Source: Rebecca billardiae RCC1528
Taxonomy: Eukaryota; Protista; Haptophyta
Length of the DNA: 64,000 nucleotides
NCBI GenBank assembly: GCA_965240325.2
Contig: OZ251244.1
Span: 1-64,000 of the forward strand
Direction of reading: 5' to 3'
The translations under genes were made by a program, and so were the position numbers. Positions 4,201-63,252 of this stretch are shown in pieces. Each line of letters starts with the position of its first letter. The stretch's first letter is position 1. The notes under the pieces were generated by a model that was not told the origin of the DNA, ran no database searches, and saw nothing but the letters and a program-made list of their open reading frames with translations.

Positions 4201-4564
4201 CGAGCGGCAGGCCTCGGTGCAGCGCCGGGCGCGCGGCCCTAGATCTTACCGTACACGATCACGAGCGCGCACGGCAGCAGTCGTCGTAGACGGTGCAGCA
4301 GCTGCTGCGCACGCCGAGGGCAGGTCGACGAAGTGTTCGATGGGGGGGCGGGGCGGGGGCAGCCTTGACAGACGCGCAGCGCTCGAGCGGCCAGCCTCTC
4401 CGACGCGGGCTCGCGCTCGTCCGCGCCGTCGCCGCGTACAATCCAACGCCCCGAAAGGCAGTAGGCCTCCGTCACTCCGTGTAGCACGATCCACCGGAGG
4501 GCGGCATCCCACCGCTCCATCGCGACCGTGCGGCAGCACCGCCCCGCACTCGGCTACGCTGCCA

Positions 4565-4777
4565 CGGCGGACCACTCGTCCCTCGTCAGCCGCGACGACG
4601 TAGTCTCGGCCGGTTTCTTTAGTCGGCGGTGACTATGCGTATAGCGCGAACCAGCTAGCCAATCGCTAGTCTCATATAGTTTCTAGGCGCCGAATCCGCA
4701 GATCAGATAGCAAGCCCCAGTTTATTCTTAACGTGACAGCTACTCCTTATTGCCCGCTATTATTGCGCCTGCTGAAT
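4565..4777 (-). mobile_element. Decayed partial copy of the MITE at 62453-62960 (left arm, inverted)
   Basis: Collinear with the reverse complement of 62453-62614, with 11 small insertions over 4565-4757. Confidence 0.9.
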
Positions 4778-5164
4778 ACATCAGCACCATTGTCTAAGTC
4801 GATCGCGGGCGGACCGCAAGTCCGCGCCGCGGCCACCGTCGCGTCACGGGCGCGCGCCGCGAGCAGTAGCTAGTACTCGAAGTTGCGGCGCCGTGCAGCA
4901 CTATCGGGCACTTATGCTATCCGCGCGTACTGACTACTGGCGGCGGCGGCGAGCGACTAGGTGAGTAGGCTACTACTACTAGGACGCGCACCGAGGACGG
5001 GCCCCGGGCGCAGCGCCCTACTACGACGCTTCAGAGTCGGTTTACCGGTGGTATATAGAGAGGCACTGCACCGCCGCTTGCTTCGGCGCGCGCCGCCCTC
5101 CGAGCTGATAGCGCGTCGGCTGCACGGCGTCGGCAGAGCCAGTGATAGTCCGCCAGACACAAGC

Positions 5165-8100
5165 GCCCGCGCGCCGAGCGCAGCTGCTCGAGCGCGGAGC
5201 GGCCGCGCGGAAGCTCGGCGCTGCGGGAGCCCACGCGCCTCGACGCGTACGACAAATCGCCGCAGCGCGTTTCCAGCACCGTCCGCCGACTCGAGGCGCC
5301 GCTGGGCGGCGCGCGGCACCGCGCGCACCAGTCTGCAGCCTCGCTCGAGTGCGCGCGCAGCTGCGCGCGCGCCCGTGCGCGCGCCGAGCCCAGCGGCTCG
5401 AGCGCGGAGCGGCCACGCGGAAGCTCGGAGCGGCGGGAGCCCACGTCCCTCGACGCGTACGTCAAATTGCCGCAGCGCGTTTCCAGCACCGTTCGCCGCC
5501 TCGACGCGCCGCTGGGCGGCGCGCGGCACCGCGCGCACCAGTCTGCAGCCTCGCTCGAGTGCGCGCGCAGCTGCGCGCGCGCCCGTGCGCGCGCGCCGAG
5601 CCCAGCGGCTCGAGCGCGGAGCGGCCACGCAGAAGCTCGGCGCGGCGGGAGCCCACGTCCCTCGACGCGAACGTCAAATTGCCGCAGCGCGTTTCCAGCA
5701 CCGTTCGCCGCCTCGACGCGCCGCTGGGCGGCGCGCGGCACCGCGCGCACCAGTTGGCAAGTCTGCAGCCTCGCTCGAGTGCGCGCGCAGCTGCGCGCGC
5801 GCCCGTGCGCGCGCGCCGAGCCCAGCGGCTCGAGCGCGGAGCGGCCGCGCGGAAGCTCGGCGCGGCGGGAGCCCACGCGCCTCGACGCGTACGACAAATC
5901 GCCGCAGCGCGTTTCCAGCACCGTCCGCCGACTCGAGGCGCCGCTGGGCGGCGCGCGGCACCGCGCGCACCAGTCTGCAGCCTCGCTCGAGTGCGCGCGC
6001 AGCTGCGCGCGCGCCCGTGCGCGCGCGCCGAGCCCAGCGGCTCGAGCGCGGAGCGGCCACGCAGAAGCTCGGCGCGGCGGGAGCCCACGTCCCTCGACGC
6101 GAACGTCAAATTGCCGCAGCGCGTTTCCGGCACCGTCCGCCGCCTCGAGGCGCCACTGGGCGGCGCGCGGCACCGCGCGCACCGCCCGGCAAGTCTCGAG
6201 TGCGCGCGCAGCTGCGCGCGCGCCCGTGCGCGCGCGCCGAGCCCAGCGGCTCGAGCGCGGAGCGGCCGCGCGGAAGCTCGGCGCGGCGGGAGCCCACGCG
6301 CCTCGACGCGTACGACAAATCGCCGCAGCGCGTTTCCAGCACCGTCCGCCGACTCGAGGCGCCGCTGGGCGGCGCGCGGCACCGCGCGCACCAGTTGGCA
6401 AGTCTGCAGCCTCGCTCGAGTGCGCGCAGCTGCGCGCGCGCCCGTGCGCGCGCGCCGAGCCCAGCGGCTCGAGCGCGGAGCGGCCACGCAGAAGCTCGGC
6501 GCGGCGGGAGCCCACGTCCCTCGACGCGCACATCAAATTGCCGCAGCGCGTTTCGAGCACCGTCCGCCGACTCGAGGCGCCGCTGGGCGGCGCGCGGCAC
6601 CGCGCGCACCGCCCGGCAAGTCTCGAGTGCGCGCGCAGCTGCGCGCGCCCGTGCGCGCGCGCCGAGCGCAGCGGCTCAAGCGCGGAGCGGCCGCGCAGAA
6701 GCTCGGCGCGGCGGGAGCCCACGTCCCTCGACGCGAACGTCAAATTGCCGCAGCGCGTTTCCGGCACCGTCCGCCGACTCGAGGCGCCGCTGGGCGGCGC
6801 GCGGCACCGCGCGCACCGCCCGGCAAGTCTGCAGCCTCGAGTGCGCGCGCAGCTGCGCGCGCGCCCGTGCGCGCGCGCCGAGCCCAGCTGCTCGAGCGCG
6901 GAGCGGCCGCGCAGAAGCTCGGCGCGGCGGGTGCCCACGTCCCTCGACGCGTACGTCAAATTGCCGCAGCGCGTTTCCAGCACCGTTCGCCGCCTCGAGG
7001 CGCCGCTGGGCGGCGTGCGGCACCGCGCGCACCGCCTGGCAAGTCTGCAGCCTCGAGTGCGCGCGCAGCTGCGCGCGCGCCCGCGCGCGCGCGCCGAGCC
7101 CAGCGGCTCGAGCGCGGAGCGGCCGCGCGGAAGCTCGGCGCGGCGGGAGCCCACGTCCCTCGACGCGAACGTCAAATTGCCGCAGCGCGTTTCCGGCACC
7201 GTCCGCCGACTCGAGGCGCCGCTGGGCGGCGCGCGGCACCGCGCGCACCGCCCGGCAAGTCTGCAGCCTCGAGTGCGCGCGCAGCTGCGCGCGCGCCCGT
7301 GCGCGCGCGCCGAGCCCAGCTGCTCGAGCGCGGAGCGGCCGCGCAGAAGCTCGGCGCGGCGGGTGCCCACGTCCCTCGACGCGTACGTCAAATCGCCGCA
7401 GCGCGTTTCCAGCACCGTTCGCCGCCTCGACGCGCCGCTGGGCGGCGCGCGGCACCGCGCGCACCGCCCGGCAAGTCTGCAGCCTCGAGTGCGCGCGCAG
7501 CTGCGCGCGCGCCCGTGCGCGCGCGCCGAGCCCAGCTGCTCGAGCGCGGAGCGGCCGCGCAGAAGCTCGGCGCGGCGGGTGCCCACGTCCCTCGACGCGT
7601 ACGTCAAATCGCCGCAGCGCGTTTCCAGCACCGTTCGCCGCCTCGACGCGCCGCTGGGCGGCGCGCGGCACCGCGCGCACCGCCCGGCAAGTCTGCAGCC
7701 TCGAGTGCTGCGCGCGCGCCCGTGCGCGCGCGCCGAGCCCAGCGGCTCGAGCGCGGAGCGGCCACGCAGAAGCTCGGCGCGGCGGGAGCCCACGTCCCTC
7801 GACGCGAACGTCAAATTGCCGCAGCGCGTTTCCGGCACCGTTCGCCGCCTCGACGCGCCGCTGGGCGGCGCGCGGCACCGCGCGCGGCAGTCTGCAAGTC
7901 TGCAGCCTCGCTCGGGTGCGCGCGCAGCTGCGCGCGCGCCCGTGCGCGCGCGCCGAGCCCAGCGGCTCGAGCGCGGAGCGGCCGCGCAGAAGCTCGGCGC
8001 GGCGGGAGCCCACGTCCCTCGACGCGTACGTCAAATCGCCGCAGCGCGTTTCCAGCACCGTTCGCCGCCTCGACGCGCCGCTGGGCGGCGCGCGGCACCG

Positions 8101-11100
8101 CGCGCACCGCCCGGCAAGTCTGCAGCCTCGAGTGCGCGCGCAGCTGCGCGCGCGCCCGTGCGCGCGCGCCGAGCCCAGCGGCTCGAGCGCGGAGCGGCCA
8201 CGCAGAAGCTCGGCGCGGCGGGAGCCCACGTCCCTCGACGCGAACGTCAAATTGCCGCAGCGCGTTTCCAGCACCGTCCGCCGCCTCGAGGCGCCGCTGG
8301 GCGGCGCGCGGCACCGCGCGCACCAGTCTGCAGCCTCGCTCGAGTGCGCGCGCAGCTGCGCGCGCCCGTGCGCGCGCGCCGAGCCCAGCGGCTCGAGCGC
8401 GGAGCGGCCGCGCGGAAGCTCGGCGCGGCGGGAGCCCACGCGCCTCGACGCGTACGACAAATCGCCGCAGCGCGTTTCCAGCACCGTCCGCCGCCTCGAC
8501 GCGCCGCTGGGCGGCGCGCGGCACCGCGCGCACCGCCCGGCAAGTCTGCAGCCTCGAGTGCGCGCGCAGCTGCGCGCGCGCCCGTGCGCGCGCGCCGAGC
8601 CCAGCGGCTCGAGCGCGGAGCGGCCACGCAGAAGCTCGGCGCGGCGGGAGCCCACGTCCCTCGACGCGAACGTCAAATTGCCGCAGCGCGTTTCCAGCAC
8701 CGTCCGCCGCCTCGACGCGCCGCTGGGCGGCGCGCGGCACCGCGCGCACCAGTCTGCAGCCTCGCTCGAGTGCGCGCGCAGCTGCGCGCGCGCCCGTGCG
8801 CGCGCGCCGAGCCCAGCGGCTCGAGCGCGGAGCGGCCACGCAGAAGCTCGGCGCGGCGGGAGCCCACGTCCCTCGACGCGAACGTCAAATTGCCGCAGCG
8901 CGTTTCCGGCACCGTCCGCCGACTCGAGGCGCCGCTGGGCGGCGCGCGGCACCGCGCGCACCGCCCGGCAAGTCTGCAGCCTCGAGTGCGCGCGCAGCTG
9001 CGCGCGCGCCCGTGCGCGCGCGCCGAGCCCAGCTGCTCGAGCGCGGAGCGGCCGCGCAGAAGCTCGGCGCGGCGGGTGCCCACGTCCCTCGACGCGTACG
9101 TCAAATCGCCGCAGCGCGTTTCCAGCACCGTTCGCCGCCTCGACGCGCCGCTGGGCGGCGCGCGGCACCGCGCGCACCGCCCGGCAAGTCTGCAGCCTCG
9201 AGTGCGCGCGCAGCTGCGCGCGCGCCCGTGCGCGCGCGCCGAGCCCAGCTGCTCGAGCGCGGAGCGGCCGCGCAGAAGCTCGGCGCGGCGGGAGCCCACG
9301 TCCCTCGACGCGAACGTCAAACTGCCGCAGCGCGTTTCCGGCACCGTCCTTCGACTCGAGGCGCCGCTGGGCGGCGCGCGGCACCGCGCGCACCGCCCGG
9401 CAAGTCTGCAGCCTCGAGTGCTGCGCGCGCGCCCGTGCGCGCGCGCCGAGCCCAGCGGCTCGAGCGCGGAGCGGCCACGCAGAAGCTCGGCGCGGCGGGA
9501 GCCCACGTCCCTCGACGCGAACGTCAAATTGCCGCAGCGCGTTTCCGGCACCGTTCGCCGCCTCGACGCGCCGCTGGGCGGCGCGCGGCACCGCGCGCGG
9601 CAGTCTGCAAGTCTGCAGCCTCGCTCGGGTGCGCGCAGCTGCGCGCGCGCCCGTGCGCGCGCGCCGAGCCCAGCGGCTCGAGCGCGGAGCGGCCGCGCAG
9701 AAGCTCGGCGCGGCGGGAGCCCACGTCCCTCGACGCGTACGTCAAATCGCCGCAGCGCGTTTCCAGCACCGTTCGCCGCCTCGACGCGCCGCTGGGCGGC
9801 GCGCGGCACCGCGCGCACCGCCCGGCAAGTCTGCAGCCTCGAGTGCGCGCGCAGCTGCGCGCGCGCCCGTGCGCGCGCGCCGAGCCCAGCGGCTCGAGCG
9901 CGGAGCGGCCGCGCAGAAGCTCGGCGCGGCGGGAGCCCACGTCCCTCGACGCGAACGTCAAATTGCCGCAGCGCGTTTCCGGCACCGTTCGCCGCCTCGA
10001 GGCGCCGCTGGGCGGCGCGCGGCACCGCGCGCACCAGTCTGCAGCCTCGCTCGAGTGCGCGCGCAGCTGCGCGCGCCCGTGCGCGCGCGCTGAGCCCAGC
10101 GGCTCGAGCGCGGAGCGGCCGCGCAGAAGCTCGGCGCGGCGGGAGCCCACGTCCCTCGACGCGAACGTCAAATTGCCGCAGCGCGTTTCCGGCACCGTTC
10201 GCCGCCTCGAGGCGCCGCTGGGCGGCGCGCGGCACCGCGCGCACCAGTCTGCAGCCTCGCTCGAGTGCGCGCGCAGCTGCGCGCGCCCGTGCGCGCGCGC
10301 TGAGCCCAGCGGCTCGAGCGCGGAGCGGCCGCGCAGAAGCTCGGCGCGGCGGGAGCCCACGTCCCTCGACGCGTACGTCAAATCGCCGCAGCGCGTTTCC
10401 AGCACCGTTCGCCGCCTCGACGCGCCGCTGGGCGGCGCGCGGCACTGCGCGCACCGCCCGGCAAGTCTGCAGCCTCGAGTGCGCGCGCAGCTGCGCGCGC
10501 GCCCGTGCGCGCGCGCCGAGCCCAGCGGCTCGAGCGCGGAGCGGCCACGCAGAAGCTCGTCGCGGCGGGAGCCCACGTCCCTCGACGCGCACGTCAAATT
10601 GCCGCAGCGCGTTTCGAGCACCGTCCGCCGACTCGAGGCGCCGCTGGGCGGCGCGCGGCACCGCGCGCACCGCCCGGCAAGTCTGCAGCCTCGAGTGCGC
10701 GCGCAGCTGCGCGCGCGCCCGTGCGCGCGCGCCGAGCCCAGCTGCTCGAGCGCGGAGCGGCCGCGCAGAAGCTCGGCGCGGCGGGAGCCCACGTCCCTCG
10801 ACGCGTACGTCAAATTGCCGCAGCGCGTTTCCAGCACCGTTCGCCGCCTCGACGCGCCGCTGGGCGGCGCGCGGCACCGCGCGCACCAGTTGGCAAGTCT
10901 GCAGCCTCGCTCGAGTGCGCGCGCAGCTGCGCGCGCGCCCGTGCGCGCGCGCCGAGCCCAGCTGCTCGAGCGCGGAGCGGCCGCGCAGAAGCTCGGCGCG
11001 GCGGGAGCCCACGTCCCTCGACGCGTACGTCAAATTGCCGCAGCGCGTTTCCAGCACCGTTCGCCGCCTCGACGCGCCGCTGGGCGGCGCGCGGCACCGC

Positions 11101-12450
11101 GCGCACCAGTCTGCAGCCTCGCTCGAGTGCGCGCGCAGCTGCGCGCGCCCGTGCGCGCGCGCCGAGCCCAGCGGCTCGAGCGCGGAGCGGCCGCGCGGAA
11201 GCTCGGCGCGGCGGGAGCCCACGCGCCTCGACGCGTACGACAAATCGCCGCAGCGCGTTTCCAGCACCGTCCGCCGCCTCGAGGCGCCGCTGGGCGGCGT
11301 GCGGCACCGCGCGCACCGCCTGGCAAGTCTGCAGCCTCGAGTGCGCGCGCAGCTGCGCGCGCGCCCGTGCGCGCGCGCCGAGCCCAGCGGCTCGAGCGCG
11401 GAGCGGCCACGCAGAAGCTCGGCGCGGCGGGAGCCCACGTCCCTCGACGCGCACGTCAAATTGCCGCAGCGCGTTTCCAGCACCGTTCGCCGCCTCGACG
11501 CGCCGCTGGGCGGCGCGCGGCACCGCGCGCACCAGTTGCCAAGTCTGCAGCCTAGTGCGCGCAGCTGCGCGCGCGCCCGTGCGCGCGCGCCGAGCCCAGC
11601 GGCTCGAGCGCGGAGCGGCCGCGCGGAAGCTCGGCGCGGCGGGAGCCCACGTCCCTCGACGCGTACGTCAAATTGCCGCAGCGCGTTCCGAGCACCGTCC
11701 GCCGACTCGAGGCGCCGCTGGGCGGCGTGCGGCACCGCGCGCACCGCCCGGCAAGTCTGCAGCCTCGAGTGCGCGCGCAGCTGCGCGCGCGCCCGTGCGC
11801 GCGCGCCGAACCCAGCGGCTCGAGCGCGGAGCGGCCGCGCGGAAGCTCGGCGCGGCGGGAGCCCACGTCCCTCGACGCGTACGTCAAATCGCCGCAGCGC
11901 GTTTCCAGCACCGTTCGCCGACTCGAGGCGCCGCTGGGCGGCGCGCGGCACCGCGCGCACCAGTTGGCAAGTCTGCAGCCTCGCTCGAGTGCGCGCGCAG
12001 CTGCGCGCGCGCCCGTGCGCGCGCGCCGAGCCCAGCGGCTCGAGCGCGGAGCGGCCGCGCAGAAGCTCGGCGCGGCGGGAGCCCACGTCCCTCGACACGT
12101 ACGTCAAATCGCCGCAGCGCGTTCCGAGCACCGTCCGCCGACTCGAGGCGCCGCTGGGCGGCGCGCGGCACCGCGCGCACCACCTGGCAAGTCAGTTGGC
12201 GCGCGCAGCTGCGCGCGCGCCCGTGCGCGCGCGCCGAGCGCAGCGGCTCGAGCGCGGAGCGGCCGCGCGGAAGCTCGGCGCGGCGGGAGCCCACGCGCCT
12301 CGACGCGTACGACCGATTGCCGCAGCGCGATTCGATCGCCGTCCGCCGCCTCGACGCGCCGCTGGGCGGCGCGCGGCACCGTGCGCGGCACTCGGCAAGT
12401 TGCACTCGGCTGCACTCGCGGCGCGCGCGGAGCACACGGCTCGAGCGCGG
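5165..12450. repeat. Subtelomeric GC-rich satellite, ~207-220 bp unit, ~34 copies
   Basis: Unit core CTCGACGCGxACGxCAAATxGCCGCAGCGCGTTTCC counted 34 times from ~5240 to ~12330; the last copy is degenerate. Confidence 0.97.
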
Positions 12451-14850: not shown

Positions 14851-15326
14851 CGTTCGCTGCGAGTGAGCGAGAGGCACTGGACTGCGTCGGTTCGCTCGGC
14901 GCCTGATGATAAACCCAGTTCACCAATTGGCCGTCCTGTGCCGCCGCCAACCTTGCCTATTTGCCTAAGGCCCAGGAGCATCACAGCGAGTAGGTTGTTC
15001 GGGGTCGTTGTGCGAGCGCACAGAGCAGGCTCGAAAGTCCTTCGTGGCACGAGAAGAGGGTGGCCAAGATGGCAGCCGGACTTGAGCTCGGCCGCCTGGC
15101 TCGGGCCGAATGGCAGGCAGGTGTTGATACGGCGCATTGCGCTCCCACCGTCCTCTTAGACAATCAGCACAGCAACGACTTCTTTTTTAAAGCGGCCGTT
15201 AGCGTGTCCATCGGCCGGATTATTTTACGGAAAATTACTATGCGCTGCGCGCGCGCGCCCAGCGGGCGGCGCGCGCGCGCGACTAGTCCCCCCTGCATGC
15301 CCTAACCGTCAGCTGCCTGATTCCCG

Positions 15327-18300
15327 CTACCCAGCCCCGCTGCCGTCGCGCGCGACATCCGCGCCGTCGCTCACCGTCGCCGAGGCCGAGCGCGCCGCCG
15401 CCCTCAATTTGCTCTTGAGTGCCGACAAGTCCTCCTCCGGAAGCCCAGCCTCCTCGCGCACGAGCTTGCGCGCCGCGATGTACTCGTCGACCAGGTCGTG
15501 CGCGCCGGCCTTCGCCTTGCGCTGCCATTCGCGCTGCCGCTTGCCCTCCTTCTTCAGCCAGAGCCGCCGCACCTTGTCGCCGAACTCCTCCTCCGCCCAC
15601 GTCGCAAGCGACACGCGGCGCAGGAGCTGCGCGGCCGTCGAGATGTGCGGCTGCACCGTCGACTTCTTCCCCTCGGCATACTCGCGGACGAACGAGTCGA
15701 GCGACTTGCGCGCGTTCACGAGCGGCATCGCCCGCTTGGTCACCTGCACGAAGTGCTCCTGCACCTGCTCGTCCGCGAGCTGCACGAGGTGGCCCCACCG
15801 CCTGATCAGCAGAGGCAAGACGAACCGCGCGATCGTCTTGTACTGCGAGGTGACCGGCTTGAGGACGAACAGGTCGAGCGCCTCGACCCACGCCGTCGCG
15901 GCTGCCTCAACCTCGTCCGCACGCTTCGCGCGGCCATCGTCATCGTCCGTGTAGCCGCGCGAGGAGACGAGGTCGTGCAGCTGCCACGTGAGCATGAGCA
16001 GGCGGCAGAAGAGTGCCATGCGCGGCATGTCCGCGATCTCGGCCTTCAACTGCGCCTCGTCGTCAAAGCCGATCTCGTCCATCATCTCGCGCTCCTCCTC
16101 GTCCTGCATGTCCGAGATGCGCGCGTCCTCGTCGCCGCTGTCCGCCGCGCCCGCGCTGCTCGCGCCGTCGAGATCCGCGTCGATCTTCCACACGACCTGC
16201 ACCAACGCCCAGAAGACCGCGTGCGTGCGCAGCAGCGAGATGCCGTCGCCGCGGAGGTCGGGCACGCCGATCTCGTTGGTGCGCGTGCGCCGCTTGGGCA
16301 CTCGCACAGGCACGCCCGCGTTCTTGAACAGGACGATCAGGTCGTACTTGGTGAGCGGCGCGTCGCGGCCGTACAGCTCGTCCACCTCCCTCCACAGCGC
16401 CGACAGCACCGGCTTGAAAGTGTCGTGCTTGAAGTGCATGATGCCGGGGAAGTAGTTGACGTGCTCGAGCTCCAGCTGCGGTAGCAGCCACTGGTTCTCG
16501 TGCAGCTTCTGGTCGACGATGCGCTCGGCGTCCTTCGAGTCGTCGGCGAGAAGGCGGCGGCGCTTGGTCATCTCGGCGTCGCACTCGCCCTGGTCGGCAG
16601 GCGTGACCTTGCACGCAGGGCACGTCACGCCCGGGTCCGCGTGGCACAGCGCGCGCGCGCGCTTGTACGTGCGCAGCCGCCACTGAGGCGAGCCGCCGTC
16701 CGCGCCCGCCTCCTTGACCGCCCACACGTTGAAGCGGAGCGGCGAGACGTTGTGCGAGCCCTGGCCGGCGAGGCTGGCAAGGTTGACATAATCGCCGGTG
16801 TACGTGATGATGGCCTTCTGCTCCTCCGCGTAGTCGGCCGCCTCGCCGCCGCCGCCAAAACCGCCGCCGGCCGCGCCGCCCGCCGCGCCGGCAGCGCCGG
16901 CCGCGCCGGCCGCGCCGGCCGCGCCGGCCGCGCCGCCGGCCGCGGCGGCCGCGGCGGCCGCGGCGGCCGCGCCGCCGGCCGTGCCCGCGCTCGGGTTGCC
17001 AGCCGCGCTGCTCGCCGCGCCGCCGGCCGCGCCACCGGCCGCGCGGACGCCAGCGCCGGCGGTGCCGCCAGCCACGCCGCTGCCGCTGCCGCTGCCGCCC
17101 GCGCCGCCCGCGCCGCCCGCGCCGCCGCCAGCGCCCGCGCCCGCGTTACCAGCCGCGCCGCCGGCCGCGCCGCCGGCCGCGCGGACGCCAGCGCCGGCGG
17201 TGCCGCCAGCCACGCCGCTGCCGCTGCCGCCCGCGCCGCCCGCGCCGCCCGTGCCGCCGGCCGTGCCGCCGGCCGTGCCGCCGGCCGCGCCGCCGGCCGC
17301 GCCGCGGGCCTCGCCGCGGCCCGCGCCGCCGGCCGCGCCGGCTGTGACGGCCGCGGCCGCGCCGCCGGCCGCGCCGGCCACACGTGCGGTGGCGGCAGCA
17401 GGCGGCGTCGGTCGCGGCGGAAGCAGGCCGCTCCGGATCACGTCATTGATCGCGTCGGCGTGCGCACTCCATAACTCGGACATGTCCGAGTCCGGCCGCT
17501 CCGAGATGGCGATCGCCTCTGACGACGCGAGCGCGCCGTAGTTGACGCCCCAGCCGTTGCGCACGATGGCGATCGTGGCCGTGCGCGAGTGAGCCGTGTT
17601 GCCCGCGTCCGCCGAGAGGAGGAGGACGTGCGGCTGCCCGCGCGGGCGCGCGGACTTGCCGTTGCGCTCCGAGCGATCCAGCACGGCGTGCACGGCCTGC
17701 GCCCACGGCCGCGCCGCCGACTCGCTGCCGATCATGAGCACGCCCGCGCCCGCGTGCTCGCGATCGCGCTGCGCGACCTCTCGAGAGCCAGCCGCCGGCG
17801 GCGGGATCGGGTGGCGGATCGGCTCGCGGCCGAAGCCGCCGCGGAAGACGGTGCGGGCCGAGTGCTCGCCCGTCACCGGGTGGATCTCCTTCCCCACCCA
17901 CTCGCGCCACGTGTCGAACTGCGCGTCCGTGACGTTCTTCGAGACGAGGTAGCCGGCGACGTCGTGGTGCGTCTGATGAGATTGAATCTCGCGCACAACG
18001 CCCACTGCGCCGCGGCGCTGCTGGAGGTAGGCGTGCCTCGCCCACGGCTTGCGCGAGCCGTCGTCTGCGCCCTCGAGCATCTCGTGCAGCACGAGGTCCA
18101 TCACGTCGTCGGGCGTGCCACGCAGGATGTGCTCGATATGGTCCGCCTCCCCCCGCCTGCGCTTGCGGCACGCGTTGCTCGAGACCGAGAGAGATGGGCG
18201 CTGAGCGCGCTGCCGATGAGCGCCGTCCAGCCCGTTCAGCTCGGCGAGGTGCTCGAACTTGCCGGCGGCTCGGTCGGCGCGCTTGCGCGCGGCGTCCTTG

Positions 18301-19634
18301 TCGCGCTTGAGCTCGACAAGCTGCGACTGCTGCTCGTCGCAGAGCGACTGGGCGTGCGCGCACTGCTGCTCGAGCAGCTGCTGCGCGTGCAGCGCAGCCG
18401 CGAGCTCGTGCTCGACGCCGCTCAGCGCGTCAGCGGCGATGTGCTCGGTCGCGGTGAGGCGGCGCTCCAACTCGAGGGCCCGATCGCGCTGCGCGTCGGC
18501 GGCGCGCTGCGCAGCTGCGGCCCGCGCGTTCGCCTCTTCGAGATCGCGCCGAAGCTTCGCCTGCGCCTGCTCCGCCTCGGCGTCGTGGCGGGTGCGCGCA
18601 TCCGCGCTGTGCCCGGCGCGGTACCCGGCGAGCACAGCGCGCCTCTCCGCGGCAGCAGCGGCGGCGCGCGCGGCGGCGATCCGGTCGAGGGCCTCGCGCT
18701 CGATGTTCTCGCACTCGAGCTTGACGGCGGCGATCACCACGTCGAGAACCGGCTCGAGATCGACGGCGGCCGAGTTGACGATGTCCTCGCGCTGCCGCAC
18801 CGCGTCGTCGCGCTCGCGCTCGAGCTCGCCGTTGAAGTGCTCGAGCTCGGTCACACGTGTGCGCAGCGAGGTGAGCTCGAGCTCGGAAGGGACGCTGCGC
18901 GTGCTGTGCGAGCGCCGCAACTGCTGCTCGAGCTCGGCCACGTGCTGCAGCTCGGCCATGCGCCTTCGACCCCGTGCTGTCTGCTCGTCCGCCTCTGCCT
19001 CGGGCGTCGGCGCCACGCTGCCAGCCGAGCGCGTGAGAGGCCGCTGGCGGGTGGGCGCGGCCGAGAGCAGCACGGCAGGCGGCGGCGACATGAAGGCGGG
19101 CGAGGCGACGGCAGGTGACCTCGGCGGCAGCAGCTCTTCCGCCGACCCACCGACGAACGACTGCGCCGCCGCGCCAGCGAGGAGGAGTGGCGGCGCGGGC
19201 TGGCGGGAGGCGCTGCGCGTGACCGCGGGCGACGGCGCAGCGGCAGCAGGAAAGCTCAAGGCGGAGGAGGCGTTGGTAGTGGCGGGCGAGAAGACGAGGT
19301 GGTCGGCGTGAGCGGGAAGAGACGAGAAGCGGGCAGCGACGACGGCGGGAGACAAATCGGCGGCGGCGGCGGCGGCTGATGCCGCCGCCTCGCCGCCATC
19401 AGCTCGAAGGAGAGCGAGCGCGCGCGCGGTCGGTGGACGGGCGGCATCATGCGGCGAGGACAGCGGCTGCGGCTGCGGCCGCGGCCGCGGCCGCGGCCGC
19501 GGCTGCGGCGGCTGCACGAGCGGCGGAGGCAGGTGCGGAGGCGCCGACGGCAGCTGCGGCGGTGGCGGAAGCGACGGCAGCGGCGGCGGCCCCAACGGAG
19601 GCAGCGGCTGGGTGTCCGCGACCGCGTAGGGCAT
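15327..19634 (-). CDS. RAG1/Transib-like DDE transposase with N-terminal Pro-rich and coiled-coil region; start uncertain (first ATG 19634, frame open to 20063, possible splice from ORF1)
   Basis: Ordered motifs RPSLSVSSNACRKRRR, VTDAQFDTWR, LLLSADAG (D 17607-9), YTGDY (D 16791-3), PGIMHF, LRGDG, TSQY..LPLLIRRWGHL..ADEQVQEH (E 15756-8) parallel the RAG1 core. Confidence 0.75.
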   Translation of the reverse strand: MPYAVADTQPLPPLGPPPLPSLPPPPQLPSAPPHLPPPLVQPPQPRPRPRPRPQPQPLSSPHDAARPPTARALALLRADGGEAAASAAAAAADLSPAVVAARFSSLPAHADHLVFSPATTNASSALSFPAAAAPSPAVTRSASRQPAPPLLLAGAAAQSFVGGSAEELLPPRSPAVASPAFMSPPPAVLLSAAPTRQRPLTRSAGSVAPTPEAEADEQTARGRRRMAELQHVAELEQQLRRSHSTRSVPSELELTSLRTRVTELEHFNGELERERDDAVRQREDIVNSAAVDLEPVLDVVIAAVKLECENIEREALDRIAAARAAAAAAERRAVLAGYRAGHSADARTRHDAEAEQAQAKLRRDLEEANARAAAAQRAADAQRDRALELERRLTATEHIAADALSGVEHELAAALHAQQLLEQQCAHAQSLCDEQQSQLVELKRDKDAARKRADRAAGKFEHLAELNGLDGAHRQRAQRPSLSVSSNACRKRRRGEADHIEHILRGTPDDVMDLVLHEMLEGADDGSRKPWARHAYLQQRRGAVGVVREIQSHQTHHDVAGYLVSKNVTDAQFDTWREWVGKEIHPVTGEHSARTVFRGGFGREPIRHPIPPPAAGSREVAQRDREHAGAGVLMIGSESAARPWAQAVHAVLDRSERNGKSARPRGQPHVLLLSADAGNTAHSRTATIAIVRNGWGVNYGALASSEAIAISERPDSDMSELWSAHADAINDVIRSGLLPPRPTPPAAATARVAGAAGGAAAAVTAGAAGGAGRGEARGAAGGAAGGTAGGTAGGTGGAGGAGGSGSGVAGGTAGAGVRAAGGAAGGAAGNAGAGAGGGAGGAGGAGGSGSGSGVAGGTAGAGVRAAGGAAGGAASSAAGNPSAGTAGGAAAAAAAAAAAGGAAGAAGAAGAAGAAGAAGGAAGGGFGGGGEAADYAEEQKAIITYTGDYVNLASLAGQGSHNVSPLRFNVWAVKEAGADGGSPQWRLRTYKRARALCHADPGVTCPACKVTPADQGECDAEMTKRRRLLADDSKDAERIVDQKLHENQWLLPQLELEHVNYFPGIMHFKHDTFKPVLSALWREVDELYGRDAPLTKYDLIVLFKNAGVPVRVPKRRTRTNEIGVPDLRGDGISLLRTHAVFWALVQVVWKIDADLDGASSAGAADSGDEDARISDMQDEEEREMMDEIGFDDEAQLKAEIADMPRMALFCRLLMLTWQLHDLVSSRGYTDDDDGRAKRADEVEAAATAWVEALDLFVLKPVTSQYKTIARFVLPLLIRRWGHLVQLADEQVQEHFVQVTKRAMPLVNARKSLDSFVREYAEGKKSTVQPHISTAAQLLRRVSLATWAEEEFGDKVRRLWLKKEGKRQREWQRKAKAGAHDLVDEYIAARKLVREEAGLPEEDLSALKSKLRAAARSASATVSDGADVARDGSGAG

Positions 19635-19999
19635 CACGGCGGCGGACGATGGATCGGATGGCGCGTCGGCGCAGAGGCCGGGCGTGAGACCGAGGACTGG
19701 AACATGCGAGAGAGGCTGAGAATGAGAATGCAGATGGGCATGCGTGGGATCGAGGGCAGAGAGATCGAGGGGGGGATGCGGCGCGACCGCGCCGTCACCA
19801 GCTGGCGCGCGACGCCATCGGGCGCTGCTCGCTGCTCGGCGAGTGGCGGTCAGCTGCTCGCGCTGCGCGCGGCGCGCTCTCCAGTCCGCGCGCTTGCGCC
19901 GTGAGACGTCGGACTCGGGCGGCGCCGCCGGTGCCGCCGCGGCGGGCGCCGCGGCAGGCGCTGCCGGCGGCGCGCCCGTGAGCTCCGACGGGCCCTTCG

Positions 20000-20857
20000 T
20001 CACAGACGGCGTGCGCCGCCAGCCCCGCCTCCGCCGCGGCGCATCGAGACGCCCTGCGCGCACACCTTGAGCAGCTCGCCGCTCACGTCAGCGCGCCCCT
20101 TCTCCTTCTTGAAGCGCCATGGCTGCATCAGCGCGTAGCGCTCGGCGTCGACGCTCACGCCGCCCTGCGCGTCCTGTGGCGCGTGCAGGCCGCCCTGCGC
20201 GTTGAGCGAGATCACGCCCACGCGCACGTGCGCGAACTGCTGGTACGCGCCGTCCGGATCGAGCCGATGCATCTCGGTGTGCTCGATCGAGAGCGAGTGC
20301 ACCGTGTTGATCGCCGAGAGGTGCCGGTCCGTGCGCGCGCCGCCGAGCGCGTTCGCCCGCAGCGGCTTCGGGACGCGGCGCATGCCCAGGTTGAGCCACG
20401 TCGAGATGCGCTCGGGCTGGTACGAGCTCACGGTGCGCCGCGTGCGGTCCTTCTCTCGCGTCTCGTGCACGACGCCCTGGTCGTCGAGCGAGGTGAACAT
20501 CGGCGAGTAGAGGGCGTCACGCGGGAACAGCGCCAGCTTGGCCTTGCGCAGCAGGTTGCCCTTCTTCCGGCTGCCCTTGATGGCGACGAAGTTGTTGACC
20601 TTGCGCTTGACCTCCGCCAGGTAGTTCTCGTTCGGCATGATCGAGTGGTCCACCTCGCTCGCCGCCTCGCGCGCGCGCAGCATGAGCGTCTCGTGCTCAG
20701 CCGCCTTCTCCGCGGCCGCCGCGGCCATGCGCCGCCGCACAGATGCGGCAGAGACCTTGCGCCCGATGCCGTAGCCGCCCTTCCGCTGCAGCTTGACCTT
20801 CTTCGGCTTCGCGCAGGAACGCTTGCCCTTGCCCACGGTAAGCACAGCCGTCGTCAT
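20000..20857 (-). CDS. Transposon ORF1, 285-aa basic protein of unknown function (or first exon of the transposase)
   Basis: ATG start, GC3-biased coding-like codons, Lys/Arg-rich N-terminus; AAG|GTGTGC donor-like site at 20065. Confidence 0.75.
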   Translation of the reverse strand: MTTAVLTVGKGKRSCAKPKKVKLQRKGGYGIGRKVSAASVRRRMAAAAAEKAAEHETLMLRAREAASEVDHSIMPNENYLAEVKRKVNNFVAIKGSRKKGNLLRKAKLALFPRDALYSPMFTSLDDQGVVHETREKDRTRRTVSSYQPERISTWLNLGMRRVPKPLRANALGGARTDRHLSAINTVHSLSIEHTEMHRLDPDGAYQQFAHVRVGVISLNAQGGLHAPQDAQGGVSVDAERYALMQPWRFKKEKGRADVSGELLKVCAQGVSMRRGGGGAGGARRL

Positions 20858-21419
20858 TGCTGCGCGCGGCGAGCGCGGTCCCGCGCGGCCGTGCCAGGCG
20901 CAGCCGCAGCAAGTTAGTCTGATGCAAATTCCCGGTCACCCATGCAAAAGTAAGCGTTCCCGCTGAGCATGTGCGTGGATCACGAGTAACCCGCCGCCTG
21001 AATACAAACTCCGCGCCCCTCCATACACTTCCTGCATCCCCGCGCGCGGCGGCGTGCAGGCGGGCGCAGATTCGCACCGTGTTACGAACAGACCTAGCAA
21101 AGTAGATCGGCGTGGCGGGTCGGGACGCGGAGCGGGTGCGGGGCAGGTGGGGGATAGGTTGGGGAACACCCGCGATTAGAGCACCGGTGGCGCAGCGGCG
21201 ACGTGGACGCCGCCACACGCGCACGCACGGCGCACGCGCGCACCGGGACTTTCAACTTCGCGTCGGAGCTCTGGACGACCGTCGGTTGGTCCGAGGCGGC
21301 GCGAGGAGGCTCTCGGGATTGTGGCCGGACGCCCGGGTTGAGCCGTTAACGGCCGAAAATCAATTTGTTGGAGTTTCCTTAACGGCCGCTTTAAAAAAGA
21401 AATCGTTGCTGTGAGTTAT

Positions 21420-51924: not shown

Positions 51925-53845
51925 TCACACGTAGCCCTCGCCCTGCAGCTTGGCCATCGGATCCTCCGTGCGGCGCTTCGCCAGGTAGTACGCCTCCATG
52001 TCCTCCGCCGTCGTCTCGTCCGCCGCCATCGAGTTGTACGCGCGCTTGCGCTCGCCGCCGCCGCCGTCGGCCGCGTGCCGCTGCCGCTCGCGCTCGAGCG
52101 CGGCGGCGAGCTTGGACGAGTCGAGCTCCTGCTCGGCGAGGGCCTCGCCGATGCCGAAGAGCGTCTTGATCGGCACCGACGCGCTCCCGTTCGCCGCGCC
52201 GTTCGCCGCGCCGCTCGGCGCCGCGTCGGCGCCGCCGCCGCCCGCCGCGGGCGGCGCCCCGCCCGCGGCGAGCGTGGCCTCCGCGAGCTCGCGCGCGCGC
52301 CTGCCCGCCGCGCCGGTGGAGTACGAGTTGCGCTGCGTGGAGTGGTCGTCAGCGTAGCCCCAGCGCAGCGTGCGCCGGTCGAAGAAGGAGCCCCACACCG
52401 CCGTGTGGTTGTGCGCGAGCACGTCCTCCTCGTACCGCGAGCGCACGGGCGCGCGCGGGCCGAGCGCGCCGCCGTCCTTAGCGCGCACGCGCCCCGCGCG
52501 GTCGTACTCCACGTACGCCTCGGACTGCGCGAGGAGGAGGCGCGCGTCGGGGGCGTGCAGGTGCTCCTGCCCGCCGTACTTGCTCAGCACCGAGTTCGCC
52601 TTGCTCTCCTGCCGAGGGCGGGGGGGGGGGGGGGGGGCGGGCACGCGAGGGCGCCGACGGGCGGGGCGGGGCGAGGCGTGAGCGGGCGGCGCGGCGCGCG
52701 CGCACCGCCGCCGCCGCTCGCGCGCGCTCGCGCGCGCGCTCGGCCGCTGCTGCCGCTGCGGCGCACGGCGCGGGGCGGCGGCGCACCTGCAGCTTCTCCT
52801 TCTTCTCGCGGTACAGCCGGTTCATCAGCTCCACCTGCGTCGGCTCCGCGTTCAGGTGTATCTCCTGCCCGCGCGCGTTCGCCTCGCGCGCGTAGGTCTC
52901 GATCTGCTGCAGGGTGGTCGAGTCGCCGCCCATCCGCACGAAGTTGTCGCCCGCGAACGCGCCGCCCGCGCCGTCGCCCTCGTCGCCGGGCTCGCGGTCG
53001 GGGCGCGGGTTCTGCCGCATCGAGCGCGTCTTCGGGTCGTAGTACGCGCTGTTCACGTCGAGGTTGAGCAGGTACTTGGCCGTGTCCTCGCGGATGCGCA
53101 GGTTGCGCACCGTCATGCGCAGCGCGCCCGGACGGGTGCCGCCGCCCTCGCGCGCGGCGACGACCGCGTCCTCCTCGCGCATGCGCACGCCGTCGCCCTC
53201 GTCCGACGCGCCGCCGCCCGCGCCGCCGCCGCCGCCCTCCGCCCCCGCCGGCGCGCCCTCCGCGCCGCCGTCCGGCATGGCCTTGGCCTGCGCGTCGAGC
53301 GCGCTCAGCCGCTGCGTGTGCAGGTGCTGCGCGCGCGCCGCCTCCTCGAGCTCAAAGCGCGTGCGCACGACGGCCTCGTGCTGCGACGGGTCGTACCCGG
53401 CGAAGCGGTCGCGCTTGCCCTCGTACGACAGGTTCGGCGCGTCGGCGAGGTACTCGTCCGGCTTGATGTCGCGCCCCGTCAGCCGCGCGCCGCGCGCGCG
53501 CGGCCGGTCGACGCAGTCCTTGGCGCCGTGCGTCATCGCGCCGCAGTTGGGGCACGCGCCCTTGCGGTACTTGGTGGCCGCGTCCTTCTTGGTGCCGCGG
53601 ACGTACCACGCGTCGATCCCCGCCGTCTCCTCCTTCTGCTTCGAGTTGCGCTGATGCTTGAGCCCGGGCGCGCCCTGGTTGAGGTACCACGGCGCCTTGG
53701 CCATGAACTCGGGGATGTGCGGGTTGATCTCGCGGCCCTCCTCATCGCGCTCGGCGGGGAGCGTGCCCGCCTTGCGCGCCTCCTCGAGCTCGCGCGCCTT
53801 CTTGTGGTCCGTGCGCGAGAGGAACTGCCCCGTCGACGACGCCAT
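51925..53845 (-). CDS. SLU7: Pre-mRNA splicing factor SLU7, 2 exons (intron 52609-52786)
   Basis: LEEARKAG..INPHIP..APWY, zinc knuckle RKGACPNCGAMTH..KDC, VRNLRIREDTAKYL.NL..SAYYDPKTRSMR, NHTAVWGS. Confidence 0.97.
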
Positions 53846-54105
53846 GGCGGCCGAGCGCGGGGCGGATGACCCCTGTCTCGACCGGAGCCCCGCGCGCGTG
53901 CAAGCCGCCTTCCACCAAGGGAGTTCACCCACCCGGCTAGGTCTTGGCGGGTCTCGTCAAAAGCGCCGCCATCGTGGGCCGTTTCCGCGGCAGCTTGAGA
54001 CGAACGACATCACAGCGGGAGGCAGCGCAACCTCTCGCCCTCTTCGCGCGCGCGCGGCAGCAGCAGCAGCACAGCCAGCCGGGGCGGGCGCGGTCGCCCG
54101 CGCCG

Positions 54106-62304: not shown

Positions 62305-62452
62305 CTGCTAGTGACGATGACGACGCCGATGACGACTGCTTAGAATGATGGCGGCGCGCACGGCAGCGCAGCATTAAGATCAGAAGCCATCATCAGCGTA
62401 TGCGCGCATATCGCGTATGCTGATATGCGCGCGATATACTGATGAACGAATA

Positions 62453-62960
62453 CAGGCCATCGCGGGCAATAAGGAGCTGTCACGTTAAGAAACTGGGGCT
62501 TGCTATCTGCGGATCTGGCCTAGAAACTGAGGCTAGCGATTGGCTGGTTCGCTATACGCATAGTCACACTAAGAAACCGGGACTACGTCGTCCCGGCTGA
62601 CGAGTGGTCCGCCGAGGGGCGAGGCGCAGTCGGCCCGTCGGGGACGCGGCGCGCGGCCCGACTACGAGTACAGGCCAAGTCCCGACTTCTCCTGATGACT
62701 GACTCCTGGCCAGTGCACCGCAGCATCCATGCAACATCATGCCAGATTTGCTCCAAAAAGGCCCAAAATTTTCGTCGGCCTCGCCGGCCGGGCCTAAAGA
62801 CTCAGCGGGGGGCTCTGCCCCCCTTATGGGCCCCCCGCGCCTGCGCGGCGGGCGGACCTAGCTAAGAAACTGAGACTCCGTAGGCGCTCGGGCTACCGAA
62901 CGGCTAAGAAACTGAGGCTAGCCGTGAGATCTCTGACTTCTTATTGCCCGCGATTGCCTG
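62453..62960. mobile_element. 508-bp MITE with TA target duplication (Tc1/mariner-like ends)
   Basis: 24-bp TIR CAGGCMATCGCGGGCAATAAGRAG (2 mismatches); TA at 62451-2 and 62961-2; no convincing ORF. Confidence 0.9.
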
Positions 62961-63252
62961 TACTTAAGTTACAACGATAGCGACGACGACGACGCGAATG
63001 CATCAGCATCGAGTCCGCGACGCGTCCCCGGCCGGATATCACTACGTACTGCTACAGCATACGCTCGTCATCATCGTCATATATGCGTAGTCGTCATCAG
63101 CATATATATATATATATCATCATCATTCACGGGCTGTCACGGCCAGTGCGGCCCAGTCGGACTCACACGGTCCGATATACTCGGGCCGGCGGCAACACGC
63201 ACGGACATGTTGAGCCGCGTCCACCAACGGGCGGCAGTGCTCGCCGTCTGCA

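Follow-up and report, generated by a model that had tools for sequence, protein, structure and literature searches.

Short insertions outnumber deletions and substitutions in decaying copies of a MITE family of the haptophyte Rebecca billardiae

How does a mobile element come to decay by growing? To our knowledge, neutral DNA in almost every organism studied decays by base substitutions and a net loss of bases. The question is raised by one locus in the haptophyte alga Rebecca billardiae RCC1528, a decayed copy of a miniature inverted-repeat transposable element (MITE) that lies within positions 1 to 64,000 of contig OZ251244.1 (assembly GCA_965240325.2); this whole stretch of 64,000 nucleotides is called the window here. 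An initial annotation, made from the letters of the window alone, had aligned positions 4565-4757 to an intact copy of the element and had listed 11 insertions, no deletions and about 4 substituted bases, from which it proposed that the copy decayed chiefly by small insertions and that the cause might be an unusual process of mutation or of repeat inactivation. Three things have to be settled: whether the spectrum of this copy is real, whether it is shared by the rest of the family, and what kind of event leaves such scars.

We aligned the window copy in two ways, with MAFFT to the intact copy and with affine gaps to a 510-bp consensus from 30 young copies (Table 1). The copy is 77% identical to the consensus over 4562-4761 (blastn), and the match breaks down upstream of 4565, so the copy is truncated. 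Against the consensus it carries 13 insertions of 1-7 nt between 4565 and 4766, 0 deletions and about 5 substitutions, among them those at 4670, 4691 and 4758. Within 4565-4777 neither the alignment to the intact copy nor that to the consensus contained a deletion, and every gap fell in the reference. The 11 insertions listed initially were recovered as the same set, with the single difference that positions 4689-4693 are parsed as an inserted G and an inserted A with a substitution, in place of an inserted GC. A search of the genome with the decayed copy found its extra bases in no other copy (best other match 81%); because no other copy has them and the consensus rests on about 100 copies, the changes are derived insertions, private to the window copy, and the direction first assigned to them was right. 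The further statement that most of the insertions copy adjacent bases holds for the window copy (about 8 of 13) but not for the family, in which about one third of the insertions of at least 3 nt do so. These results confirm that the window copy decayed mainly by gaining short insertions, not by substitutions or deletions.

Table 1. The two MITE copies discussed in the text and the bases gained by the decayed one (window coordinates).
Feature	Position	Strand	Remarks	Basis
Intact young MITE copy, reference of the initial annotation	62451..62962	(+)	98.6% to consensus	
Decayed, truncated copy of the 510-bp TA-flanked MITE	4545..4778	(-)	consensus ~3-177, left arm including the terminal inverted repeat	blastn
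7-nt insertion CTCGTCC	4575..4581		6-nt copy of the next bases (CTCGTC) + 1 filler base	consensus alignment
4-nt insertion TCGG	4606..4609		imperfect copy of the CCGG that follows	consensus alignment
1-nt insertion, one T of run	4618..4620		disrupts the MITE's TAAGAAAC-type motif	consensus alignment
5-nt insertion CGGCG	4624..4628		without copy of adjacent bases	consensus alignment
2-nt insertion GC	4644..4645		tandem copy	consensus alignment
4-nt insertion AGCT	4653..4656		AGC copy + T (complement of first copied base), fits the P-like rule	
4-nt insertion ATAT	4674..4677		flanks not copied	consensus alignment
Two 1-nt insertions, G 4689 and A 4693	4689..4693		flank one substitution (4691)	consensus alignment
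5-nt insertion CAGAT	4699..4703		exact tandem copy	consensus alignment
3-nt insertion TTA	4722..4724		TT copy + A (complement of T); disrupts TAAGAAACTG motif	
3-nt insertion CTA	4740..4742		CT copy + A (complement of T)	consensus alignment
5-nt insertion ATTGC	4762..4766		within the terminal inverted repeat; ATT copy + GC copy	
Possible extra insertion CTGAA	4772..4776		just before the terminal TA	candidate

The element is a Tc1/mariner-like (Stowaway-type) MITE: it is short and non-coding, its 510-bp consensus ends in 26-bp terminal inverted repeats, TA bounds every aligned copy, and the copies are many, the 26-bp end being found genome-wide 194 times in forward and 196 times in reverse orientation and the reversed control 0 times. 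A metagenome scan for the MITE end gave 0 matches. To sample the family, we selected copies by their end alone, whatever lay inside: the first 100 perfect 26-bp end matches were taken, and these defined 67 elements. After alignment of every copy to the consensus, a change entered the counts only if a single copy had it; this was done for a set of 59 copies and for a set of 96 non-redundant copies from which duplicates had been dropped. The 59-copy set omits three copies that aligned poorly (L071, L081, L099), three with a replaced segment (L086, L111, L117) and both tandem units on contig C11. Those with a replaced segment (G000:C5:918409, C10:2941368 and C11:1850870) belong to a MITE subfamily that has about 300 bp of unrelated sequence in place of consensus positions ~141-295. 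The tandem units (L118/L119, G000:C11:1923789-1926348) are a tandem segmental duplication with a 1159-bp period that contains an insertion-laden MITE copy, and apart from some 260 bp at one of their boundaries they are nearly identical. Every quantitative result given here concerns fixed differences, in a single assembly and for the most part in this one family.

The excess of insertions proved to be a polarised, family-wide bias, as the initial annotation had supposed from a single copy. The 59 copies held 319 private insertions, 48 private deletions and 139 private substitutions; in the 96 copies the corresponding numbers were 582, 100 and 235, with 2744 bp gained and 408 bp lost. When distinct events were counted once, shared ones included, there were 649 insertions, 117 deletions and 351 substitutions, and when insertions that are possibly related were also collapsed, 548, 111 and 351. 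Insertions therefore exceed deletions about 5-6 to 1 and substitutions about 1.6-2.4 to 1. Private insertions rose with private substitutions from copy to copy (Spearman 0.76), the load of insertions per copy was overdispersed (mean 5.9, variance 52), and the 22 of 62 copies without a private substitution had 22 private insertions among them, a single copy accounting for 9. Insertion sites were spread evenly along the MITE (variance to mean 1.4), with one mild hotspot at consensus 152-157, and no sequence motif was found at these sites, neither a cleavage motif nor a cryptic recombination-signal-like context (enrichments 0.7-1.4-fold). Since insertions track substitutions and their sites are even, the insertion bias accumulates in place with the age of the copy. 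Its presence across about 100 copies points to unusual breakage or mending of DNA in the genome of this alga.

The initial annotation had recommended that insertions, deletions and substitutions be tabulated against repeat consensuses genome-wide. Counts made for individual repeats gave the excess in the MITE family but an ordinary spectrum in two other repeats. One of these, a GC-rich 216-bp satellite at 5168-12404, lies 400 bp from the decayed MITE copy and consists of about 34 units of 207-220 bp that are 92% alike; the bias had been expected to recur there, but the pipeline used for the MITE found in it 37 distinct substitutions, 10 deletions and 4 insertions, demonstrating that the method is not biased to insertions. 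The very long open reading frames (ORFs) across this satellite are by-products of the repeat. The other, a 205-bp repeat at 2468-2851, likewise lacks an insertion excess, and the two together demonstrate that the process does not act alike on all repeats. The satellite may be spared because breaks in a tandem array can be mended from neighbouring units.

Insertions of the same kind were seen in further repeats. A small alignment of a second, unrelated transposable element family (at least 1806 candidates) held about 14 singleton insertions, about 2 deletions and 47 substitutions, and the insertions include events of five copied bases plus filler as well as bare CG and TA. We rejected this family as a clean replicate, since the older copies sampled are different subfamilies with replaced segments, and the singleton count alone is usable. 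The terminus of a third repeat shows the same kind of insertion events. Small insertions are also present in a subtelomeric tandem repeat of about 185 bp at 1517-2100 (2.7 units, 87% alike), whose unit 2 contains CTACG-A-CTACG, a 5-nt copy with one filler base. A very abundant repeat of 1.27 kb or longer (L004:2234-3507 and relatives, G000:C3:2261725-2262998; at least 1806 candidates, many 97-100% identical) often adjoins MITE copies, and its terminus is also found on its own, as an element of about 200 bp.

A related signal was found in 58 kb of low-GC DNA that is non-repeated in the sample. There, 5-mers recur after 1-3 spacer bases 1.6-1.9 times as often as in shuffled sequence (+4.5 to +7.5 sd), and at 0 spacer bases they recur at the shuffle level. 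GC-rich, coding-like DNA showed codon periodicity alone in its 5-mer spacing. The spacing of repeated 5-7-mers over the whole window was discarded, being swamped by this periodicity, and was redone on the low-GC segments. A count of duplicate-complement-duplicate 5-mers in unique DNA was also set aside as uninformative, with a period of 3 that is confounded with codons.

The inserted bases have an anatomy of their own. The 582 insertions are most often 2-3 nt long; their length distribution falls to 23 events at 5 nt and rises again, to 36, at 6 nt. The commonest are 1-2-nt additions without a copy, and 376 of the 582 copy 0-1 flanking base. Exact tandem copies number 97, of which 51 are 1-2 nt long and close to chance placement; among longer insertions they make up 31 of 114 at 3 nt, 9 of 56 at 4 nt and 2 of 80 at 6-8 nt. 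The recurrent build is a copy of X adjacent bases, then a filler, mostly of 1-3 nt, and then the original X. Copies of at least 3 adjacent bases open 120 of the roughly 355 insertions of at least 3 nt, as against about 21 by chance. By copied length, 85 events were observed at 2 nt (63 expected by chance), 48 at 3 nt (17), 21 at 4 nt (3), 36 at 5 nt (1.2), 7 at 6 nt (0.2) and 5 at 7 nt (0.2), a spectrum with peaks at 2-3 and 5 nt and a steep fall at 6.

The filler follows a rule in the shorter classes. Where 2-3 bases are copied and the filler is 1-3 nt long, the filler complements the adjacent end of the copied bases in 50 of 57 events, compared with 54% of random placements (p 5e-8); we refer to such filler as P-like. 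Full inverted copies of four bases, such as GA-TC-GA and CC-GG-CC, exist. Copies of 5 nt come with filler that usually measures 1-4 nt, with 2 the most frequent length, and that is not significantly P-like (14 of 24); their fifth base favours a purine (G 19, A 10, C 6, T 1). Of the 78 single-base insertions, 47 complement a neighbouring base (null 35 ± 4) and 22 repeat one (null 35). Palindromic dinucleotides account for 70 of the 149 two-base insertions (CG 30, AT 16, TA 13, GC 11), with AA found once and TT four times, and most of the CG insertions do not copy a neighbour. The inserted bases are near-equimolar, with 54% GC as against 61% for the MITE. When the 102 insertions of at least 8 nt were compared with the surrounding 100 bp, a significant match was found in 11% (direct) and 6% (inverted). 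The bases of the element ends do not recur among the fillers of the MITE insertions. Of mariner-type scars, only TA-C and TA-GT occur among the 2-nt copies with filler, along with a few TACAG/TACTG strings and 13 plain TA insertions.

We judge it somewhat more probable than its negation that the window copy is an old Tc1/mariner-like MITE decayed by scars of double-strand-break repair that add bases, with a mixed source of breaks. A break would form with a short stagger of 0-7 nt; both ends would be kept and not resected, and fill-in of the overhang would duplicate 2-7 bases; 1-3 extra bases would be added, often the complement of the terminal base, through off-centre opening of a hairpin or turn-around of the polymerase; and the ends would be ligated by non-homologous end joining (NHEJ). 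Under such a scheme insertions would exceed deletions because ends are rarely resected, and would exceed substitutions because base substitution is slow. Junctions of the form duplicate-filler-duplicate with copies of at least 3 nt were found well above chance and deletions were few, as in duplications made by fill-in and NHEJ, and the complementary filler suggests either that hairpin ends were opened off centre or that a polymerase turned around when its template ended. The anatomy of the scars, their counts, their polarity and their dependence on age are observations, from which we infer the source of the breaks and the enzymes acting at them: excision of cut-and-paste transposons, which leaves footprints, has slightly less than an even chance, and a transposon-independent source slightly more, with both quite possibly at work. 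Repeated staggered cuts with fill-in end joining and serial transposon footprints were already named in the initial annotation; the duplicate-filler-duplicate scars fit, and these two are the leading candidates. A survey of family-X polymerases and NHEJ genes had also been suggested there, and the genome does encode Ku70/80 (two Ku-domain genes) and two family-X polymerases, along with three family-A polymerases. The presence of the Ku70/80 and polymerase genes constrains nothing about the mechanism.

Several observations weigh against end-joined break scars of mixed origin. The copied length is not smooth, and its peaks at 2-3 and 5 nt with the fall at 6 favour target-site duplications of fixed size over random spacing of nicks. 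About 80% of the insertions have no clear copy of a flank, so that a stagger at their origin is putative. The satellite next door and the 205-bp repeat have no insertion excess. The data come from one assembly and mainly from one family, and in counts of fixed differences a bias in fixation is inseparable from a bias in mutation.

A rival idea is that nearly all scars are serial excision footprints of cut-and-paste transposons, made up of both copies of the target-site duplication and of hairpin-derived or untemplated bases, which we regard as possible but doubtful. The discrete peaks and the P-like filler of the 2-3-nt copies are what it has in its favour, and hairpins formed on flanking DNA, opened and then joined by NHEJ, are known from the excision of hAT, Transib, RAG and MULE elements (PMC5499845). 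A RAG1-fold transposon stands in the window at 15168-21413, intact and with a 2-bp duplication (AG/AG); the 30-nt end of its family marks 90 termini across the genome, each with 0-1 mismatch and not one of them decayed, a pattern that rapid turnover could produce, and by our own estimate about 1e-4 excisions per copy per generation would account for the 2-3-nt class. The spacing of paired ends suggests two size classes for this family, of about 3.5 kb and about 6.2 kb. However, about 80% of the insertions have no target-like duplication, yet the deletions that nibbling would leave are rare; the fillers contain no recurring element-end bases, the sites are near-uniform and without a target motif, and the 5-nt class is not P-like. 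Mariner-type scars (TA-CAG/CTG-TA) are only a handful although TA-type families are abundant, about 49 kb of MITE sequence contained no element nested within a copy, and the footprints would have to accrue faster than substitutions. A bolder proposal, that the main agent rewriting non-coding DNA is a nuclease which forms hairpins and cuts widely, perhaps the RAG1-fold transposase or a domesticated relative, with P-like and untemplated bases added by end joining, strikes us as unlikely; if true, V(D)J-like scarring would outpace base substitution in this alga and would steadily lengthen its neutral DNA.

Other explanations leave the breaks out. The input of small insertions and deletions could be ordinary, and in a very large population insertions could fix far more often than either deletions or neutral substitutions, whether through gene conversion that favours insertions, as reported in animals, or through some other fixation bias. 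Our counts are indeed of fixed differences and not of new mutations, the base composition of the genome (~77% GC) suggests strong biased gene conversion, and such a bias could account for the excess of insertions over both deletions and substitutions. Yet it leaves the anatomy unexplained (few exact tandem copies, P-like filler, the 5-nt peak), the inserted bases are poorer in GC than the MITE and the genome, contrary to GC-biased conversion, and the 216-bp satellite has no such bias, so that we hold this explanation to be improbable. Still less credence is due to the idea that the insertions were made inside the MITE upon its excision, by error-prone gap-repair synthesis copied back from the sister or an ectopic copy. 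Ac/Ds and P elements are known to undergo abortive gap repair that leaves filler DNA, and the overdispersed load and the one copy with 9 private insertions and 0 private substitutions would agree with it, but the same scars occur in the non-mobile subtelomeric repeat and in non-repeated low-GC DNA, the terminal inverted repeats are hit too (4762-4766), which would end mobility, and insertions correlate with substitutions as in decay in place. In fungi, repeat-induced point mutation (RIP) produces C-to-T transitions in duplicated DNA only. A RIP-like defence that recognises repeats and mutates them by insertions would fit the heaviest loads lying in dispersed transposon copies, and repeat inactivation was among the processes first proposed for this locus. 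That part of the proposal did not survive: sites are near-uniform, C>T plus G>A make up 42 of 153 MITE substitutions with no C-to-T excess, the 34-unit satellite is spared, the excess of duplicate-spacer-duplicate motifs extends to low-GC DNA that is non-repeated in the sample, and the highly repeated copies without a private substitution have almost no private insertions. We therefore consider such a defence very unlikely.

Two further sources have also to be weighed. In humans, short insertions are most commonly tandem duplications (PMC8355091), and the exact 3-4-nt tandem copies in our set could come from ordinary replication slippage in simple DNA prone to such changes. But exact copies are a small part of the insertions, those of 1-2 nt are near chance and those of 6-8 nt almost absent, one-base insertions avoid extending runs, slippage predicts deletions too, which the insertions exceed 5-6 to 1, and the MITE is not simple sequence; slippage is thus a highly improbable source. 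Errors of the assembly or of the long-read consensus are the least probable of all. Irregular units in the telomere tract of the window speak for them, but the errors would need to concentrate in some copies when 22 have almost none, to correlate with substitutions, to avoid homopolymers and to yield structured junctions of duplicate plus complement. Moreover, the same 22 insertions are present in both units of the 1159-bp tandem segmental duplication, and 63 insertions are common to 2-5 or more copies, as if inherited through transposition. The seven readings, from end-joined scars of mixed origin to assembly error, overlap, and the weights given to them need not sum to one.

The surroundings of the locus were noted as well. 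The window opens with about 1.5 kb of CCCTAA repeats and therefore with a chromosome end; in this (CCCTAA)n telomere tract (1-1515) some units, scattered along it, have gained a C or an A or have lost a base. The window is about 77% GC, and the assembly comprises 72 Mb in 41 contigs. A 60-bp tandem repeat at 59828-60573 (about 12 units, 99% identical) lies inside a long ORF (59365-62304) and may be a coding repeat. The window also contains a gene for a bromodomain protein and, at 52478-53932 on the minus strand, one for the splicing factor Slu7, whose nearest relative among 5.8 billion proteins is a transcript of the MMETSP collection with 70% identity; other matches include Prymnesium parvum (55%), Emiliania huxleyi (49%) and many fungi, plants and green algae. 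These and other genes mark the DNA as eukaryotic. Judged from the protein matches of Slu7, no close relative of the alga appears to have been sequenced. Among the matches listed for three transposon families, none is on contigs C2, C4, C6 and C9, although these are expected to rank with the largest; they may belong to another organism or haplotype.

If the insertion excess is true, it has several consequences. Dating repeats by their divergence would be misleading in this alga, and its non-coding DNA would tend to grow, so that large deletions or some other force must balance the gain. The junctions would report on the chemistry of end processing (fill-in, hairpin opening or polymerase turn-around, untemplated addition) in a lineage whose DNA repair is unstudied. 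The young RAG1-fold transposon resides in the same genome, and its excision should leave exactly one of the observed types of scar.

How do these scars compare with those of known systems? The idea that the process might be undescribed held for the dominance of the scars and failed for their type, since hairpin-type footprints, like duplications made by fill-in and end joining, have been described before. In the literature searched we found no eukaryote whose neutral repeat copies contain more such scars than deletions and also more than substitutions, and no indel spectrum for any haptophyte; a preprint on hypermutation in chlorarachniophytes concerns substitutions only. As in RIP, repeated transposon copies are heavily mutated, but here by insertion, and neither the young repeats nor the satellite are affected. 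In a few organisms, such as C. elegans in mutation-accumulation lines, small insertions reportedly arise more often than deletions, mostly as changes in the length of runs, with substitutions dominant; the MITE insertions, in contrast, avoid runs and exceed substitutions. Fill-in and end joining make small tandem duplications at staggered breaks induced by nickases (PMC8355091), and the MITE scars resemble them in keeping both ends, duplicating the overhang, sometimes adding bases at the junction and giving a net insertion. They differ in that the published duplications span tens of bases, whereas the MITE copies are of 2-7 nt, exact duplications are rare and the filler often complements the adjacent base; in the MITE this class of scar also dominates the spectrum, above both deletions and substitutions. 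The same mechanism has been proposed for the "patch-mediated" natural insertions of rice (Vaughn and Bennetzen 2014), in the summary given in PMC7407515, where it was likewise inferred from decayed retrotransposon copies. Such joining would also be expected at the donor sites of transposons.

Polymerase-theta end joining, including synthesis-dependent microhomology-mediated end joining, leaves junctions with repeat motifs, direct or inverted, and with bases that seem to have no template (PMC7407515). It usually deletes the flanks and draws on a nearby template, unlike the MITE scars, and we rejected it as their source: deletions are rare, and local templating is confined to a minority of the insertions of at least 8 nt. 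Hairpin-type footprints of hAT, Transib/RAG and MULE elements (PMC5499845) are similar to part of the MITE scars, in that the two copies of a short duplication enclose one or a few bases complementary to the adjacent end, and a matching element exists in the RAG1-fold transposon with 2-bp duplications, which is predicted to be active in the genome. They differ in that no MITE site was seen occupied by an element, most insertions have no duplication, the 5-nt class has no complementary filler, and the flux required exceeds the rate of substitution. Tc1/mariner footprints (TA, 2-3 end bases, TA) would suit a scarred element that is itself TA-flanked and of the same type, and the few TACAG/TACTG insertions fit them, but such scars are a very small minority of the 582 insertions. 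Taken together, the kinds of junction in the MITE are known, and what appears new is the dominance of the scars over both deletions and substitutions.

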